A stretch of DNA of 64,000 bases. Origin: Caecitellus pseudoparvulus. Lineage: Eukaryota > Protista > Bigyra: Bicosoecida. A program made the position numbers and the translations under genes. Shown one piece after another: positions 10,433 through 55,796 of the stretch. The stretch lies in assembly GCA_965644315.1 (NCBI GenBank), contig CBFFRQ010000013.1:62001-126000 (forward strand), written 5' to 3'. The notes beneath the pieces are model-generated. The model did not search any database. It saw only the letters and a program-made list of their open reading frames with translations, and was not told where the DNA came from. Numbering within the stretch: the first letter of the stretch is position 1; each line of letters begins with the position of its first letter.

Positions 10433-10660
10433 GCTTCCCGAGGCAAGTGTGAGGCCAGACAACAATGCAAAGGCCGCATGCTTTACACCAAACCCAGATG
10501 ATGTCTCCCAGTGGATGCTCGGTTCTGTGCTGGCCACCCATCTGCAAGACTTCGCTGCGTCGTGTCCATCCCTGCACAGCCTTCTCACTGTCAAGCCAGC
10601 GCCGGCAGCCGGCGAGCCTCAGGAGACGCCGGGGCAGACCAGGCGCCGAACGCTGCCAGC

Positions 10661-35766: not shown

Positions 35767-38144
35767 ATGGCTGCACAGGCCACGGAACAGGGGGGGCAGG
35801 GCGAGGGCAGCATTCCTTTCAAACTCGAGGCAGGCATACTGAAGCGCCTCCCCGTGGACGCATCGCATGATGCAGGCACCCGGGAGGTGAGTAGAGTTCT
35901 TCACGTGCCTGGCGTGGAATTCGGCGCACCACGCTCGCCCCGCCGTCGCAGACTCCGGGGGTGGCCTTCGCCACTGTGGAGCCGACACCAGTCAAGGAAC
36001 CCCGCATCATCGCGGCGTCCCAGTCTGCGCTTGCCTTGCTGGGTGCCCCTGCGGGCTATGCAGAGGCCGTGCAGGGGGACGACGGTGACGTGGCTGCCGT
36101 CTTTGCTGGCAACACGCCCTTCCCCGGCGCAGTGCACGCGGCACACTGCTACTGCGGGCACCAATTCGGGCACTTTGCAGGGCAGCTGGGGGATGGGGCT
36201 GCCATCTATGCTGGCCGTGTGCAGGGGCAGGAGGTGCAGTTCAAGGGGTCTGGAAAAACGCCCTACTCCCGCTCAGCCGACGGGCGCAAAGTGCTGCGCA
36301 GTTCCCTGAGGGAATACCTCGCATCGGAGCACATGGCAGCACTGGGCATCCCCACGACTCGGGCGGCGGCTCTGGTGCTGTCCGCCAGCACAGTGGTGCG
36401 CGACCCGCAGTACGACGGAAACGCCCTCGCCGAGCGCTGCGCTGTGGTGACTCGCGTCGCCCCCACCTTCCTGCGCTTCGGCAGCTTCGAAGTGGTCAAG
36501 GACACAGACAAACTGACGGGGCGGGCTGGTCCCTCGCCGGGCGACGTGGCCCTGCTTGCTCGACTGGTTGACGTCACGGCTCAGGAGCACTTTCCGCAGC
36601 TGTGGGCAGAGCACATGCCTGCTGGCACTGAGCCTGCACCGCTGCCGTCGCCAGCTGCAGGCTGGGACGGCAGCGCCCCTGTGCCACTCACCTCCGGTGC
36701 TGCAGAGGACACGGCCGCTCCCCACCGTGGCAAGTTGCTCGGTGCGGTGTTTTCGGAAGTGGCAGCCCGCACGGCACGCCTGGTGGCGCAGTGGGCGGGC
36801 GTGGGGTGGTGCCACGGGGTCCTGAACACGGACAACATGAGCATCCTGGGGCTGACGCTGGACTACGGCCCCTACGGCTTCATGGACGCCATGGACTTCC
36901 ACCACATCTGCAACGGCTCGGACGATGGCGGGCGGTACACGTACGCCAAGCAAGCGCCCGTGTGTCGGTGGAACTTGCAGCGCCTGGCTGACTGCTGGCG
37001 CCTGCTGGCACCTGTGGAGCTGTCGCAGGAGGCGACGGAGGCCCTGCTGCAGGAGGCCTTCGACGACACGTTCGCGGCCGCGCACACAGAGCTCTTCGCG
37101 GCCAAGCTGGGGCTGGACCTGCGGCCGTTGGAGGAAGCGGAGGCGGCGGCGGCGGCAGGAGGCCACTCCGGCACCGCATCCCTCATCACCAGCCTCATGT
37201 CCCTCATGCACACCACCAAGGCAGACTTCACCATCACCTTCCGAGCCCTCACACGCCTGCCCCTGCCCCTGCCCACGCACATCGCCACTGCCCTGCGTGA
37301 CGCGCTGCCGGGCGCGGACACCGCCCCCCTCCCGGGGGTGGGCTGGGAGGATGTGCAGGTGGAGGGGGGGGACGACTCCACTTCCACAGTGCAGCTGCCC
37401 ACCGGCAGCGAGCCCGTCCTGCGCTACATCGTGCAGCGGTGTGCCTCCTTGGCCACGCAGGTGGCAGCCACCAAGGGCCGCCTGCCGGATGAACAGTTGG
37501 CGCTGTTCGCACAGTTGCTGGGGGCGGGCGACCCCCGCATGCGGCCCCACGCCGACACCATCCGCAAGGAGCTGGCCCTGCGCAAGCGCCGCGCGGCGCT
37601 ACAGCGCCTCACGCAGCAGCAGCTGACGGCAGCCAATCGCAAGGCCTGGGCGGAGTGGCTGGCAGTGTACAGTCGGCGCCTGGCAGCGGATGCGGCATCC
37701 ACGATGCCGGGCCCCGGCGCCGAGGCGGACACGTGCCTGCCCAGCGCCCTGCAGGTGGTGCGGGGGCGCCTGGACCGGTCTCTCGCCAAGTGCCCTCGGT
37801 ATGTGCTGCGAAATTACATCGCCCAGGCCGTCATCGCAGCAGTGGAGGGGGGGGACGCCTCAGCGCTGCAGGCGGCGCAGAGCGTGCTGCTGGACCCGTA
37901 CGACCTCAAGGGCCCCGCCACCGCCACCGCCTTCCTCTCTGGCTACAGCCCTCAGGCAGTCGTGCTGGCAGCTGCGGTGGACGGCACCGCCCTGCCCATG
38001 CCTGCAGCTGACATTGCTGGCGCCGGTTGTGGCACTGACGAGGCCAGCGGCGCTGGTGTCTGCTCGGCCCCCGGCAAGATCGTCGCGTACGACCAGGAAC
38101 CCCCGTCATGGGCGACAGGCCTGTGTGTTACCTGCTCCTCCTGA
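35767..38144 (+). CDS. SELENOO: protein adenylyltransferase SelO/YdiU family, Cys-containing form
   Basis: YCGHQFGHFAGQLGDG, KGSGKTPYSRSADGRKVLRSSLREYLASE, HGVLNTDNMSI, DYGPYGF, YVLRNYIAQ, C-terminal CVTCSS. One intron near 35887-35951. Confidence 0.95.
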
Positions 38145-38275
38145 GCGAGTGGCACGTGTGTGTGTCGGCGGCGTGTGGCAGCGCCGACGCACTGTGCGCC
38201 GCAGTTCAAATCCACCGCACCACGTGTTACGCAAGGCCGGCGCAGCGCAGGCCAGCACCAACCCCACCCTCAGCC

Positions 38276-39868
38276 ATGGCTGCCGCAGCTTCCAAGGCGC
38301 CTCCTGCGCCAGAGGGGCCCCCCTCGCCGCCCCCCGGCGCCAAGCGCAAGACCAAGAGCCAGAAGGCTCTCGCGAAGGTCAAGACGCGCTTCTCGTTCGT
38401 GGCAGGGCTCGGCTCCAGCGGCATGCGGGCAGTGGAGGAGGGCAGTGGAGAGAGCGTCGGTTTCTGGAAAGGCCTCAAGAATGCCAAGCGCCGCATCAGC
38501 CAGCAAGTGAGTCCTGCTGCGCCCCGTGTACAGAGGCAGGTGCTGGTGCACTGCGCCTGTTTGCCGCAGGCTCTGTCCAAGATCGGCTACGGCAAGGACA
38601 GCGAGGACGCACACTACAAGGAGAGGAAGGCGCGCATCCTGGAGTTGCAGGGGCGGTACGAACGCTTTTCGAAGTTCCTGGGGCAGTACTTGGACAGCGC
38701 TCGAGGTGCGCAGCCCGCCCCGTCGCAGTGCGACACTGCCTAGCACGCTTCGCCCTGCGCCCCGCCCACAGCCATGTGCTCTGCCGCGGCGGAGCTGTCC
38801 ACGGAAGCCCAGAACCTGTTTTCAGGCTGCCCGCCGGAGTACACTGAAGTGCTGAGCACCATGTGCGGCGCCTTGACGCGCATCGACACGGAGCTGCGGC
38901 AGGAGCTGGATGAGGTGATGACGGAGGCGGTCATCGCCCCCATCGACGCGGTGGTGGACGTCATGAACGAAGTGCGCGTGGACATGCACGGGCGGGAGTA
39001 CTTGAAGCTGGACTTCGACGCCCACCACCGCAAGGTGGCCTCCCTCAAAGCCAAGGGCACCACTGACCCCGCCGAGCTGCGCAAGCTGGACTCCAAGCTG
39101 GCACAGGACCGGGAGGGCCTGGCAGCCACCACCAAGGCCCTGTACGACGCCTTTGACGACATGGAGCGCAAGCGCTGGAGCGTCATCACGTCCGAGCTCA
39201 ACGCGTTTGTGTCGGCACAGACGGCGTTTTTCCAGCGCGCAGCAGAGGTAACGCGGGGCATGGCCACCTTCCCCGCTGAACTGCCGCGGGCGCCCATCCC
39301 CCTCACAGCTGCTACATCCACCCCCTTTGGCCCCATCACGCCACAAGGGCACCTGCCTGGCTTCCCACACCTGTATGGGGAGGGCCCCCCCCCATCAGCA
39401 GGGGAAGTGGGAGTCAAGGGCGCAGGGGGTGCCGGCACGCGTCGGCCCCACAGGGCCACCCTGCAGCCCACCGTGTCAGACCCGTCCAGCCCAGCCCCCC
39501 AGCAGGCTGGCGTCAAGGCGTACCCGACGGTGGCAGCCATTCCCCCCGCTGTGGCGCAGGCCGCCGCCGCCTCCCACCGCCGCCGCAGCAGTGTGAGCGA
39601 GGACCCCTCGCACGCCGCTGCAGCGAAAGCCGCGGTGGCAGCTAGTCGCCAGGCACCGCCCCCCACACCCCCCGTTCCGCGCAAGGCCGCTGACCGTGTG
39701 CGGGCCTGCTTCAAGTTCAGCCCCAGCTCGCCGGATGAGCTGGGCATGGCGGTGGGGGATGTGGTGGAGGTGCTGCGACGGCACGACGACGGGTGGGGCG
39801 AGGGCATGAACACCACCTCTGGCCAGCGGGGCATGTTTCCCCTGAACTACGTCGAGCCACTGGCCTGA
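38276..39868 (+). CDS. BAR and SH3 domain protein (amphiphysin/endophilin-like), 3 exons
   Basis: Helical BAR-like region (REYLKLDFDAHHRKV) and C-terminal SH3 (DELGMAVGDVVEVLRRHDDGWGEG...GMFPLNYVE). Confidence 0.85.
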
Positions 39869-42385: not shown

Positions 42386-44231
42386 ATGCAGGCGGTGGAG
42401 GTGCCGCACACGAGCACTGCTGCAGGCCAGCGCGAGAGAGTGCGCGCGTGGCTGAAGAATGCATCGGCGCTGAGGAAGGAGGCAGCTGCCGCGGAGCGGG
42501 CACTAGTTTCGAGCTTGCCTGTGCTGGGGAGGGTCTTGGATGTGAGCCAGGTGAGAGCAGGCCAGCGACAGCGCCCCAACGCACTGTGCAAGCCGCTGCA
42601 CGGGCTCCTGCACAGGAAGTATGGAAGGGCGCCTTTGAAGGTGATGCTGCGAGAAGGCAGGCAGAGTCGGAAGCTTTGCAACTCAAGTTTGAACGCTTGC
42701 AGGTGGGCAACGGTAGCCGGCGTTTCGTGCGCCCGGCAGCGTGAAACTCCACCTCCCCTGCCGCCTTTCCCCACAGCTGGACATGCAGCGCGCAAAGGAG
42801 GAGCTGGGCGCCTTCGACGCAACAGATGCTGCTCTGGCTGGCCTGCGCCGCAGCATGGGTGCCGTGGCTGCCAGCATTGACACGATGCGCGGCGACGGCA
42901 AGAAGGTGTACGGCGCTCTCGTACGGGACGCTGCGGCGCTGGACGAAGCCCTGGACAGTGGGCAGCAGGTGCTGCTGGAGCCCACCACGCCTCCTCAAAG
43001 CCCCTCTCTGCCCTCTCCCAGCAGCACCCCCGAGCCACCCAGCCACTCCCCTCTCCAGAGCAAGCCCTCGCATTCCCCTGTGCAGAGCACGCCGCCGGCG
43101 GCGCAGCAGCAGCCCTCGTCCAGCGCCCCCTCCACCGCCAGCACTGGCGTGGAGGGCTACGCCACCGTCATTGCCGCTCGGTCACAGCTGCAGCAGTGCA
43201 AGGCCGCCCTGGCAGCGGCTGACGACGCCTTGGCAGCGCACCGTGCCCGAGGCGGCAGCTTCCACTGGTCAGAGGCGGAGCAGTCCACGCTGGAGGCTGG
43301 CGTGACGGCGGTGCTTCGGACAGGACCACACGAAAGCCTGCCAGCCACACCCACCCCCGCCCTCAGTCGCTGGCTGGCTGATCGCCTGCCAGAGCGCCCC
43401 CCCTCCACCATCACCGCCCGTTACCGGTGGTTCGCAGGCCTTCGCGCACTGCAGAGCGAGCGCCGTGACGCTGTGGCGCTGTGGCGAGACGCCAAGACGC
43501 AACTGAGCGCCGCTCGTGTGCAGGCAGCGGCAGAGGAGGCGGCTGCCGCCGACGCTGAGGCAGCCACCTCCGCTGCCGCCGCCGCTGCTTCCACCATGGC
43601 TGCTGAGGCGGCTGCGGCAGCCAAGCGCCGTGCCGTGGCTGAGTGGCGTGCCCGCAAGCATGCTGACGCAGCCGCTGCGCGACAGGCCAAGGCGGAAGCC
43701 GCCGCTGCCGCACGCAAGGCCGCCGCTGCCTCACGCCAGGCCTCCCAGCGCCACAGAGCAGAGGCACGTGAAGCAGCGCGGGCGCGTGACGCCGCAAAGG
43801 CGCGGGCTGCGCGGGTTCTGGCGCAGGCGGCGCCGGAGGGGAGGGGGGGGTCCGCCCCCCCCCCCCGAGGCCCCTCCACTGCCCAGCGCGCCCGGCGAGC
43901 TGTGGAGGCTGGGAAAGCCCGGGCTCGAGCTCTGGGGCTGGGCGGCGGGCTGGCGGTGCAGGGGACGGCGGTGGGGGTGGCGCCACCCCCCCCTGCCCTG
44001 GGGGAGATCCGCATCCCCGTCGTGCCGGGAGGGAAGGTGCAGCGCCGGGTGGTGCCCGCGAACCCCGCCCGCCTCAGGGCTGGCACGGCCGCGTCCACTG
44101 CGCGGCAGGCGGCGGCGTCCGGCAGCGAGGGCGGTGGGCCCACCGGAAGGGGTGGTGGGCCCACCACGGCGTGGGCTGGCACCGGTGCACGCCGGGTGAC
44201 AGCGGTGCCCAAGTGGCGCAGTGGATTGTGA
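42386..44231 (+). CDS. CCDC112: CCDC112-like coiled-coil protein, 3 exons
   Basis: GGSFHWSEAEQ, LPERPPSTITARYRWF...RRDAVALWRDAK, NPARL and terminal AVPKWRSGL match recalled CCDC112 motifs. Introns after VLDVSQ and FERLQ. Confidence 0.65.
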
Positions 44232-51457: not shown

Positions 51458-54110
51458 ATGGAGCCCGAGTCCGAAAGGCGTTCGATCCCACTCACAGTGC
51501 GCTGCCACGTGTGCGGGGAGATAGGCCATCGAGCGGGATTCCGCGATTCGGTGTATGTTGACTGCCCCAACCGGGCTTGCTACTTGTGGTGCGTGCACAG
51601 CGAAACCCTGACGTGGTTTGCTCGCCAACGTCAGGCCCACCCCGCTGGCCTTGTCCGCTCACAGCAAGCAAGACGGCCACACCACGATGACTTGTCCCTA
51701 TCGAGCAAAGCCTGGGGATGGCAAGCTTGTTCGCAACATGGACGGCAGCAGCGTGCTGCGTCGGCTGCAGCAGCGGGAGGAGGGTCTCACGACGCCAGCG
51801 TCCACCGTTGCTCGGCGCCTAATGCGGGCACGGCGCCACCTGCCACGCCCTGTGACACACCTGTGGCAGCAGCCCCAGCACTGGCGCGTGACGTCTGCGC
51901 TTGTGAAGGTGCACTCCCGGCGCGTGACGGTGCTGGAGTTCCACCCACACCGCCCCGGCCTCCTGCTGAGTGGTGACAAGTTCGGAGAGCTGTGCCTGTG
52001 GCGCCACGACACGACGCAGCGGGAGGTTTGGAGTCCTCACCGGTACCTCGTATCGGCGCTCTGCTTCGGCGTGCGCGCAGAGGACAATGGCGTCTTCACA
52101 GGCAGCCAGGACGGCACGGTGAAGCGTGTGGACCTGACCACGCACGACAGCACGCCCCTTCTATCCCTGAACCCGGCTGGGTGGCAGGGGCGCCCCAAGG
52201 ACTGGCGCATGGTGCAGAGTGTGGCGGGGGATGAGCGCTGCCTGTGGGTGGGGGACGACGTCGGGCTGGTGCACGTGGTGGACCCCCGGGCAGGGGGCGG
52301 GGGCCACCGCGTGCAGGCCTCCTTCCAGGCCCACGCCAAGGGGGACAAGGTGCAGTGCTTGCACGCCAACCCGGGTGTGCCGTGGCTCATGGCCAGCGCA
52401 GGCAACGACAAGACTGTGCGGGTGTGGGATGCGCGCATGCTGGGGCGTGCTGCCAGCGCGTCCGCCGGGTGGGGCGTGCCCGGCACGGGTGCATGGTGGG
52501 CGCCCCAGCCGGCGGGCGGGGACCCCACCCCAGTGCTGACTTTGCAGCACTCCAGGGCAGTGAGCTCAGCTTTCTGGTCGCCCGTGTCAGGGAGGCACCT
52601 GCTCACGACGTGCTTGGACAACCGCATCCGGGTGTGGCATGACGTCATGTGCAGCGGGTTTCCTCAACGCTCAAAGGCACAGCCACCGCCCTCACCTGCT
52701 GCCAGTCGGGCTTCGGATGATGCATTTGCCTCCCCAAGCGTGCATGCGCCAGTGCGGGGTGGTGGCACTCCTCGTGCAGTAAAGAGCGGTGATTTGAGCC
52801 TTGGCGAGGCGGTCCCACCTCCCTCCACCACGCTCATCCACAGCCACGACTATGGCAGGTACCTGTCGCCGTTTCGGGCGGTGTGGGACCCGAAGGACAC
52901 CCGGGAACGGCTGATCGCGTGTGGGCGGTACATTTCCGACAGCTTCGGCGGGGTGAAGCTGCACCCCGTGGATTTGCTGGATGCCAGCGGAACAGCGGGG
53001 GGATCTGGTGTAGTAGCTCAGCTTGTGGACCCCATCGTGACGACCATCACACCCGTGACAGCCATATCCCCACACGAACAAGCAATCGCAGCGGGGTCCA
53101 GCATGTCCCTGTTCTTGTGGAAACCTGTGTCCGCTGGGAAGCAGCGTGCTGACGGAGTAGGATCGGGCGAAGGCGACGACACGCCAGCCACCGCATCAGC
53201 CGATCGCGACCAGGCCACACGCAGCCCTGCGCCCTCCGACAACACACCTTGGTGGGAGCTCCCAGAGCACTGCCTTGTGGAGTCCCCCGTGAGCAAGGGG
53301 AGCAGGGGGAGCGGCAAGAAAGGCGGCAAGAAGCGGCAACGCAATGCCGCCGCCGCCTTCACTGCCGCTGCCGAAGCAGCACTTGAGGCCCAGCCCCCAG
53401 CACCAGAGGTACTGCTGCTGGACGGGGCTGAGGGTGACGTCCAGCCATACAGCATGCAGGCAGCTCTGAAGAAGGCCCGGCGCGCGACCCAGGCAAAGGC
53501 GCGCAAGGCCATGAAGACCACGGCAGCGGGCGACTCTACATCCCAGCGATCTGGGGCGTCGAGCGAGCCGCGCAAAACTGCACAAAAAGGGACAAAACGA
53601 AGAAGGAAAGCGACTGACACCAACGCCAGCGTGGCAAGTTCGCAGGGCATGGCTCCCGCGTCGCCTGCACCGGCTGCGTCCGCACAGCGGCGGCCCTCAC
53701 GGCGCAGCAAGGGGTCTACGGCAAGTCCACCAGCTGTGCTCCCCACCTCACCACCTTCCACCAGCAAGTCGAAAACAAGTCCGTACTTTGATGCACAAGC
53801 TGCCGCTGACCAGGAGCTTCCAGGTGGCGCTGCGGCGGACTTGGCGAGGTTCGCTTTTCGGGGTGGCGGAGACCGAGGTCGAGCGGCACGGCAACTGTGC
53901 CGCCCAGACGCGCCGAGCAGCACTGCATCTACACTGAACACGTCCGCAACTTTAACCCAGCCCTCAGATTCCGCTGTGGCAGGCGGCCGCGGGGTCCTGA
54001 CTGGTACTCAGGAAGTCAGCGACAGCGACAGCGAGGCAGGGGACTTCACGGGCCCTGCCGCGCCGCCCCCCGAGGCGCCTGAAGGCACCAGCCCCTACTT
54101 TAAGAAGTGA
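51458..54110 (+). CDS. DDB2: DNA damage-binding protein 2, plant-type with N-terminal zinc knuckles
   Basis: CHVCGEIGHRAGF...YVDCPNRACYLC|KQDGHTTMTCPYR, HSRRVTVLEFHP, WDAR, HSHDYGRYLSPFRAVWDPKD...GRYISD...LHPVD. Confidence 0.88.
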
Positions 54111-54162
54111 CTGCCAGACAAAGCAAATGCATTGGCGTGAGCGGGAGCACAGCTTGCGCTGC

Positions 54163-54234
54163 AGCGCTGCGTTGGTCAGAGGCGGGTGTCCCGTGAGGGC
54201 TGCCGCCCGCCTCGTCGTGACGCTCACTTGCGCT
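54163..54234 (-). promoter_or_regulatory. candidate eukaryotic SECIS element (type II shape, non-canonical ACGA core)
   Basis: RNA: AGCGC..GCGU-CA-CGAC-GAGGCGGG-CGG-CAG-CCC-UCAC-GGG-ACA-CCCGCCUC-UGAC-CA-ACGC-A-GCGCU. Tandem GA/GA at the base of an 8-bp perfect stem, plus an apical mini-stem. Confidence 0.6.
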
Positions 54235-54271
54235 GGGGGGAGGAGGGGAGGTGGTGCCTCGCAGCACCACA

Positions 54272-54311
54272 GGCCCATGTCAAGGGAAGCCTTGGCTCCT
54301 TAACATGGGCC
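54272..54311 (-). promoter_or_regulatory. 14-bp RNA hairpin starting 6 nt 3' of the in-frame UGA (Sec redefinition element-like)
   Basis: GGCCCAUGUUAAGG / CCUUGACAUGGGCC: 13 Watson-Crick pairs plus one U-G wobble on the sense strand. Confidence 0.6.
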
Positions 54312-54668
54312 GCGCCCTCAAGCCCTGGGGGGCGCCTTGGGCAGGTCCCGGATGCCCATCACGCGAGGGCCACCCCCCCCGCGCCCACCTCTCCCACCCC
54401 CCCCCGTGGCACGAGCTTGGCCGCCCGTGGCAGGGGGCGCTTGTGGCGCAGTCATGCACTTGTACACTGCATACCCGGCGCCGCCAAGCAAGGCCCCCTT
54501 CATGCCGAGCAGCAAGAAGCCCAGCAGCACGATCCCCCCTGCGATGAGGAGCTCCTTCTGGCTGCCAGCACAGGCAGAAGCTTGCGCTGGGACCGCTCGA
54601 TCAGCCTGTCCATCAGCTTGGGGGGCGGTGGCACCGTTGTCGATGCGCCCGTTTGTGATTTTCACCAT
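54300..54668 (-). CDS. small SelK/SelS-like (FAM241-like TM) membrane protein, candidate selenoprotein with UGA-Sec at 54318-54320
   Basis: MVKITNGRI..., TM GIVLLGFLLLGMKGALLGGAGYAVY, Gly/Arg-rich tail GPRVMGIRDLPKAPPRA-UGA-GRGPC-UAA. SECIS-like element downstream. Confidence 0.7.
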
Positions 54669-54877
54669 GGCAGGCGCCTGTGGCAACGCAAGTGAAACGC
54701 CGCGACCTACGTTGCGCACCGAGGAGTCCATGTAGGGAGGCGCGCGCAGATGACAAGCTCCGGAGAGCCGATGTAGTTTGAAAGCTATGCGGGGATGTCC
54801 TGCAGTGCATTGTGCACGATTGTGAGGGGGGAGGGGGGGGCTGTCGTGGCCTCCAAAACCTTGCGTGAGCCAGGCTT

Positions 54878-55796
54878 TCACTTGGCAGAAGCTGCAGTGC
54901 CCTGCGCGGCGACAGCAGCCTCCTTGGCCGCGATGGCATCAGCATCCCCCAGGTAGTAATGCTTGATGGGCTTCAGGTCAGCGTCCAGCTCGTACACGAG
55001 AGGCACGCCAGTGGGGATGTTCAGCCCCGTGATCTCGTCATCCGACACGCCGTCCAGGTGCTTCACCAGTGCTCGCAGGGAGTTGCCATGGGCTGCCACC
55101 AGCAGGTCCTTGCCCTCCTTGATGGCTGGTGTGAGGGTGCCTTCCCAGTAAGGCAGCACGCGCTCCAGGGTCAGCTTCAGGCTCTCCGCAGCCGGCAGGA
55201 GGGCAGGGTCCAGGCCCGCGTACTTGGGGTCGTTGGCGGGGTGCCGTTCATCCTCCGTGTCCAGGGCAGGAGGTGGGATGTCGTACGACCGGCGCCAGAT
55301 CTTCACCTGCGCATCGCCGTGCTTGGCTGCCGTCTCAGCCTTGTTCAGGCCGGTGAGAGCGCCGTAATGGCGCTCGTTCAGACGCCAGGAGCGAAAGACG
55401 GGGATCCAGCACAGGTCCATCTCCTCCAAGACATGCCTGTGCGGCGGGCAGCAGCACTAGGCCATGCTGTGAGCGGTTGGCCAGCGAGCGCGGCACCACT
55501 CACCACAGAGTCGTGATGGCCCGCTTCAGCACTGAGGTGTGGGCGGCGTCGAACTTAAAGCCAGCTTCTTTCAGCAACACACCTGCGGCCTTGGCCTCGC
55601 TGTGCCCCTTCTCACTCAAGGCGGCGTCTGCGGGCGCCGGTTAAGAGGTGCTGGGCAGCTGCGGGAATTGCGCCCCCTCGACACGCTTTCACACACCGTG
55701 CCACCCGCAGAACTTGTTGGCCTTGTTCCACTCGCTTTCGCCATGCCTGATGAGTACCAGCCTGTGGGCAGCCGCAGAGGAGGATGCTTCGGCCAT
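54878..55796 (-). CDS. gpmA: 2,3-bisphosphoglycerate-dependent phosphoglycerate mutase, 3 exons
   Basis: [75 protein letters not shown]. Confidence 0.96.

Follow-up and report, generated by a model that had tools for sequence, protein, structure and literature searches.

The U that precedes the tandem G.A pairs in the core of the SECIS has been treated as essentially invariant, and it is built both into NTGA search patterns and into the UGAN consensus. Natural, lineage-specific SECIS of a GGGA type, in which this U is replaced, are reportedly functional in a few genes of Toxoplasma and Neospora. The published consensus for the two core strands is UGAN/KGAW (PMC3753652), and the classic search pattern asks for NTGA and then for AA or CC 10–13 nt above the quartet (PMC2375036). 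Elements from Ostreococcus and Chlamydomonas have long mini-stems and carry a lineage-specific G before the quartet (PMC2375036). The weight of the U is also evident from the kink-turns that are bound by proteins of the L7Ae family: the third base of the bulge, normally U, sits in a pocket of the protein, and changing this pocket base weakens binding by both 15.5K and L7Ae (PMC1874613). In the SECIS of human SELENON (SEPN1, SelN), a U-to-C exchange abolishes binding by SBP2 and results in rigid spine muscular dystrophy, according to a passage in PMC1874613 that cites Allamand 2006.

We analyzed a stretch of DNA of 64 kb, referred to here as the window, in which the best match to SECIS models built from the elements of other genes is a minus-strand hairpin that carries a C in place of this U. 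Comparison with other genes of the same genome and with those of relatives leads us to conclude that the hairpin is very probably a genuine SECIS whose core is a new variant, and a working signal for reading a UGA as Sec. The features of the hairpin and of the gene to which it belongs are as follows:

54116-54762, minus strand: extent of the unspliced transcript, as given by an RNA-derived contig of run X11
54321-54668, minus strand: 116-codon reading frame that starts with the ATG at 54668 and runs as far as the UGA
54320-54318, minus strand: in-frame UGA, the proposed Sec codon
54300-54317, minus strand: tail GRGPC and true stop TAA (TAA at 54302-54300)
54163-54234, minus strand: whole SECIS-type hairpin, best model match in the 64-kb window
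54234-54230 with 54167-54163, minus strand: outer part of helix I, AGCGC with GCGCU
54223-54220 with 54172-54169, minus strand: inner part of helix I, GCGU with ACGC
54214-54218, minus strand: 5' core ACGA-C, with A54218 unpaired, C for the usual U, then the G and A of the tandem G.A/A.G
54175-54178, minus strand: 3' core UGAC
54214-54217 with 54175-54178, minus strand: quartet of C54217.C54175, G54216.A54176, A54215.G54177 and C54214.U54178
54204-54213, minus strand: 5' strand of helix II, 10 positions
54179-54188, minus strand: 3' strand of helix II
54189-54203, minus strand: apical part, with loop GCAG (54203-54200), mini-stem CCC/GGG with loop UCAC, and a single 3' A
54128-54133, minus strand: AATGCA, a probable 3'-end formation signal

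A first-pass annotation, made from the letters of this DNA, had described helix I, the unpaired A, the quartet, an 8-bp helix, an apical CA and a mini-stem, all of which are present on the minus strand at the positions given there, and had placed the hairpin about 100 nt behind the UGA; the ACGA follows the in-frame UGA at a measured distance of 102 nt. Helix II begins with eight perfect base pairs (54213-54206 with 54186-54179) and is extended to 10 positions by a C54205.A54187 mismatch and a G-C pair. Directly beneath this 10-position helix GA stands on both strands, as the tandem G.A/A.G requires, the apical CA lies 11 nt above the quartet, and the CCC/GGG stem with its UCAC loop forms an apical mini-stem of the kind seen in type II elements. 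The apical layout (a 5' loop of 4–5 nt, a mini-stem of 3–5 bp and a 3' loop of 1–2 nt) is common to the other elements considered below. The mismatch at the top of helix II is variable: C54205 is a U in the RNA contigs X11 and X18 and in the genomic contig C117, and the resulting U-A pair completes the helix. C117, a contig of 18.7 kb, contains at 10511-10582 a second copy, or an allele, of the window gene and its hairpin, with a perfect 10-bp helix II. Because the folding energy by itself is unremarkable (z = -1.08, with 28 of 200 shuffles folding as well), the case for the hairpin rests on comparison. RNAfold, which does without G.A pairs, accordingly pairs GUCA with UGAC.

The predicted protein upstream of the UGA starts with MVKITNG, has one membrane helix and ends in a Gly-rich tail, ...DLPKAPPRA. 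No Pfam family matched it at E up to 1, SelK_SelG included, and BLAST found no similarity between it and the genome's own SelK. Its architecture is nevertheless like that of selenoprotein K (PF10961), with which it shares a short N-terminus, a start of the form MV.I.NG, one membrane helix, a Gly/Pro-rich tail and a Sec near the C-terminus that is followed by Gly-Arg; this is a resemblance only, and, unlike selenoprotein K, the window protein lacks a match to the SelK Pfam family and has GRGPC as its tail after the Sec. An exhaustive profile search of the databases yielded two or three relatives, two of them distant, with 33% and 51% identity. The called proteins of two homologues (P0005 and P0006) stop where the window protein meets its TGA. 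The 33%-identical homologue, which is encoded on an AT-rich contig (40% GC), ends ...PPAKC-TGA-GPQNV-stop, and so has TGA-Gly at the same place; this shared site supports Sec at this position in what appears to be a small, sparsely sampled family. The 3'UTR of the same homologue (L086:1501-1896) contains a possible AUGA hairpin, which has several mismatches and is unconvincing. As there is no Pfam match and relatives are few, it is the UGA, the tail and the SECIS that speak for the window gene encoding a selenoprotein. We consider it highly likely that the gene served encodes a small single-pass membrane selenoprotein of SelK-like architecture, ending ...PPRA-Sec-GRGPC, and that the hairpin is its SECIS.

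The DNA of the window occurs in marine metagenomes and metatranscriptomes, and 3001 bases of it were compared with the contigs of four runs. The neighbouring gene, which encodes a cofactor-dependent phosphoglycerate mutase (54878-55796, minus strand), contains two short introns of the GT..AG type, at 55436-55502 and at 55628-55696. Both introns are skipped in contigs of three of the four runs and, as they have been spliced out, the contigs derive from RNA. A metatranscriptome contig of 650 nt from run X11 matches 54762-54116 without joints, hairpin included, and a second RNA contig, from run X18, lies on 54148-54351. Since the X11 contig extends across 54762-54116 and ends 12 nt past AATGCA, the hairpin is inside the 3'UTR, as the first-pass annotation had thought plausible from its position upstream of AATGCA (54133-54128). 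The order of elements is therefore that of a selenoprotein mRNA, first the in-frame UGA (54320-54318), then the true stop (54302-54300) and then the hairpin (54234-54163). The X11 contig has seven differences from the window, the positions of six of which are listed; three of the five coding differences leave the amino acid unchanged, and the conserved C-terminal region, the TGA and the tail are untouched. None of the differences listed for the RNA contigs, nor either of the two in the X18 contig, is at ACGA or UGAC.

The assembly (30.6 Mb in 215 contigs; 67% GC) encodes a tRNA-Sec, found at 72.6 bits. It had been proposed that the 3'UTRs of the organism's unambiguous selenoproteins be compared for ACGA cores, and such cores were indeed found behind SelT, SPS2 and SelK. 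SelT was located with a query that comprised its last exon only, and the queries for SPS2 and the window protein were the pieces after or before the UGA. The Sec site of SelT is C-x-x-U, interrupted by an intron, a junction that was read by eye; 39 nt after the stop follows an element with ACGA-U, a 10-position helix, the loop GCAA, a mini-stem and UGAC. SPS2 (selenophosphate synthetase) has its TGA at the canonical KG-U-GCK site and an element of the form ACGA-U ... GCCA ... UGAC, the ACGA of which is 183 nt after the stop. SelK matches Pfam SelK_SelG at 38.7 bits and ends GGG-U-G-stop; in its element, ACGA-U ... AAG ... UGAU, the ACGA is 97 nt after the TGA. Across the elements the loop reads GCAG, GCAA, GCCA, AAG or GAAA, whereas ACGA is invariant. 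Thus, the claim that a C has replaced the conserved U holds for every element, but the accompanying claim that CA has replaced the apical AA describes no fixed state, the loops of the other elements being different. In the window element, the distance of 11 nt from the quartet fits the position of the canonical AA(R) or CC, and the letters found there are CAG. The central proposal of the first-pass annotation, a SECIS variant with C for U, is strengthened by its recurrence behind these three genes and behind SelT in two relatives.

The selenoproteome looks small, as far as this genome sequence can tell, because SelO, GPx, thioredoxin reductase, the peroxiredoxins and MsrB are Cys forms. None of these was retained as a selenoprotein; the thioredoxin reductases end LCCG, and the copy of SelO in the window (about 36078-39000, plus strand) ends CVTCSS-stop. 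MsrA loci are present in the genome, where Sep15/SelM and AhpC-TSA_2 were looked for and not found. A further hairpin of the same build, at G000:C18:545833-545893 (L097:1501-1561), scored 39.3 bits with a model that had not been trained on it; it reads ACGA ... UGCAA ... CGAU and is followed by AATGCA. One candidate exon upstream of the C18 hairpin reads ...GYRGL-TGA-GAAAV..., and Pfam gave no significant match for the upstream gene model.

We scanned six 300-nt 3'UTRs (those of the four genes and of two relatives) for hairpins with any of the 16 NNGA cores and with 9 or more pairs in helix II. Exactly one hit was obtained per 3'UTR, and all six were ACGA. When the same UTRs were shuffled with dinucleotides preserved, an ACGA hit arose in 0–6 of 1000 shuffles per UTR; for the window 3'UTR, an ACGA hairpin with at least 9 helix II pairs arose in none of 1000. 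A covariance model made from the SelT element alone, and run without filters, ranked the SPS2 and window elements first among 77 kb, and a three-element model found the untrained SelK element (25.5 bits) and the element of the closer relative (32.1 bits). ACGA and the 3' GA are among the invariant columns of an alignment of seven elements. In this structural alignment, 95.6% of the cells are in standard pairs, compared with 36–50% when the partners are slid by 1–3 columns, and all 10 pairs of helix II and all 5 pairs of the mini-stem change on both sides. Since the sequences had been aligned by fitting them to the model, and since most of the elements are not orthologous to one another, this covariation is to be read as evidence of a shared fold, and not of descent with compensation.

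Genome scans with two models (R2 and R3) returned the known loci, the copy on C117 and, as the one new hairpin, that of C18; since only 150 pre-filtered candidates were scored, the class cannot be claimed to be exclusive to selenoprotein genes. The strict pattern ACGAY-N10-GC-N23-27-TGACC matched the genome 50 times, which equals the chance expectation, and the matches with a paired helix II were only three known elements and the C117 copy. This pattern proved too narrow to serve as a detector. Elsewhere in the window, at 43451-43521 on the plus strand, there is a weak model match (13 bits, E 0.29) of the form GUGA ... UGAG, with a poorly paired helix II, which is probably due to chance.

A search with the last exon of SelT detected two metagenome proteins, 65% and 48% identical, whose contigs have a TGA at the SelT site. 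Both relatives have, 44–51 nt behind the stop, ACGA hairpins of the same build whose helices differ in sequence and whose 3' cores are UGAU and CGAG. As two relatives carry ACGA, the C has been conserved within a clade, and is neither an error nor a private mutation; the covariation in orthologs that had been suggested as a check is thus seen in the helices of these SelT genes, in which ACGA is kept. A scan of JGI metagenomes with SelT produced mostly bacterial Rdx proteins and no useful 3'UTRs. The trait may have a boundary. The nearest named relatives of SPS2 belong to a bicosoecid and to oomycetes, which is indicative of a stramenopile. In SPS2 relatives of 60–67% identity no ACGA hairpin was found in the flanks examined, one of which is only 399 nt long. 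SPS2 of a 61%-identical relative (58% GC contig, L109:2925-3000) is followed instead, at a distance of 411 nt from its stop, by a hairpin of the form GUGA ... CGAU, whose helix II is a perfect 10 bp. Since the core of this hairpin is of the UGA type, the comparison suggests that ACGA cores are limited to a narrower clade.

A second motif accompanies the hairpins. AATGCA, which has a background rate of 2.7e-4 per nt, occurs exactly once, 69–152 nt after ACGA, behind all eight of the hairpins examined (those of the window, L004, L005, L088, L097, L066, L067 and L010). From this recurrence we take AATGCA to be probably the 3'-end formation signal of the clade. At 54126-54133 in the window it is part of the palindrome AATGCATT, and is therefore present on both strands, between two convergent genes; given this location, AATGCATT could serve both.

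The standard tools do not detect these elements. The Rfam models SECIS_1 to SECIS_5 found nothing at E up to 10, either on 53800-54800 or in the genome, and they missed the ACGA elements of the relatives as well as the GUGA-type hairpin of the SPS2 relative. Because this last hairpin was missed too, the silence of Rfam indicates insensitivity for these protists more than absence. With published patterns that need NTGA, the expectation that pattern searches would overlook the element was correct. Our full-text searches of the literature on ACGA-bearing SECIS, and on atypical or unusual elements, turned up no account of a core with C.

Compared with canonical type II SECIS (RF00031), the hairpins are alike in their location in the 3'UTR after an in-frame UGA, in helix I, in the internal loop with its unpaired A, in the tandem G.A/A.G under helix II, in the 11–12 nt between quartet and loop bases, and in the mini-stem. 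They differ in having C for the U of AUGA before the G.A pairs (C54217 in the window, and ACGA in every element found), in the loop of the window element, which is CAG and not AAR, and in a 3' core that ends in C, U or G, compared with the published KGAW (PMC3753652). The base concerned is the one affected in the human SELENON mutant, AUGA to ACGA; however, ACGA is here the conserved wild-type state in all selenoprotein genes found. Like the U4 snRNA kink-turn with 15.5K/SNU13 and the box C/D kink-turns, which are bound by the L7Ae family, the elements have a three-base bulge and then tandem sheared G.A pairs, but they have C at the pocket base and stand in the context of Sec recoding. With the GGGA-type elements they share the replacement of the U before the G.A pairs in a natural, lineage-specific SECIS; there the substitute is G, reportedly in a few genes and not in the whole selenoproteome, whereas the elements described here have C in every gene found.

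Three other explanations of the hairpin have to be weighed. A chance structure in GC-rich DNA, with the UGA a plain stop of a 116-residue protein, would account for the ordinary folding energy (z = -1.08) and for a protein without family match. It would leave unexplained why the hairpin does not arise in 1000 shuffles, why the same build stands behind SelT, SPS2 and SelK, why a variant in the population compensates the one mismatch and completes helix II, and why TGA-Gly recurs at this place in a distant homologue; we regard chance as a most improbable explanation. C-to-U editing of the RNA, which would make the mature element a canonical AUGA SECIS and reconcile the genome sequence with the canonical rule, meets an obstacle in the RNA itself: the runs are RNA, neighbouring introns having been spliced out, and the RNA-derived contigs keep the C. 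Since the two differences of the X18 contig (54148-54351) and the listed differences of the X11 contig, none of them at 54217, all lie off ACGA and UGAC, editing is argued against; contigs do drop rare variants, so that partial editing could be hidden, and the probability that we would assign to editing is as slight as that of chance.

A somewhat better, yet still very unlikely, alternative is that the ACGA hairpins are kink-turn elements of the 3'UTR with another job, such as mRNA stability, localization or general binding of L7Ae-family proteins, and that Sec is specified by some other signal. In keeping with this, no SBP2 was found in the genome, ACGA is inactive in the human system, as far as the cited passage of PMC1874613 reports, and the gene upstream of the C18 hairpin is not demonstrably a selenoprotein. 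Against it, wherever a gene has its UGA at a known Sec position, the 3'UTR contains exactly one such hairpin and lacks a UGA-type alternative, the geometry fits that of a type II SECIS (11–12 nt from quartet to loop, plus a mini-stem), and the strong hits among the 150 candidates scored in the genome scan are only these loci.

If the hairpins are SECIS of the ACGA type, as we think very probable, the mechanism would follow known lines up to the point of recognition. The hairpin would form a kink-turn, with the tandem sheared G.A/A.G at the base of the 10-position helix II and a type II mini-stem; a SECIS-binding protein would recognize this kink-turn and, once bound, would bring in the elongation factor specific for Sec together with Sec-tRNA; the UGA 102 nt upstream would thereby be decoded as Sec. 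The reader protein would accept, and perhaps require, C at the pocket base. Acceptance of C must be postulated because ACGA is the regular state here and in no fewer than two relatives; and since U-to-C abolishes SBP2 binding in the human element, at least in the account given in PMC1874613, function here would need a changed reader. We infer each of these steps, the fold, the binding of the protein, the insertion of Sec and the co-adaptation of the reader; the data themselves show the sequence features, their place within the transcript, their recurrence behind bona fide selenoprotein genes, the covariation, and a genome with tRNA-Sec and a Sec-containing SPS2. An L7Ae domain of the SBP2 type was not found by a six-frame search with PF01248 or with the genome's own SNU13 domain; the L7Ae-family search of the genome identified eL8, eL30, SNU13, NHP2 and eS12 only. 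Introns may interrupt the SBP2 domain, its sequence may have diverged too far, or the reader may be of another kind. A tentative proposal, for which the chances fall a little short of even, is that the clade has switched its SECIS recognition from U to C at the pocket base, which would imply a reshaped or replaced SECIS-binding protein and an orthogonal SECIS/reader pair.

If ACGA is normal for a whole lineage, the U rule is a property of the reader protein and not of the RNA fold. Surveys that use standard SECIS tools would then undercount or miss the selenoproteins of this clade; the window gene, for instance, is called as a gene that stops at its UGA. Should the specificity prove strict, the elements and their reader would constitute an orthogonal SECIS/reader pair for engineered Sec incorporation. 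Furthermore, the clade would offer a natural system in which to learn how proteins of the SBP2 type read the pocket base.
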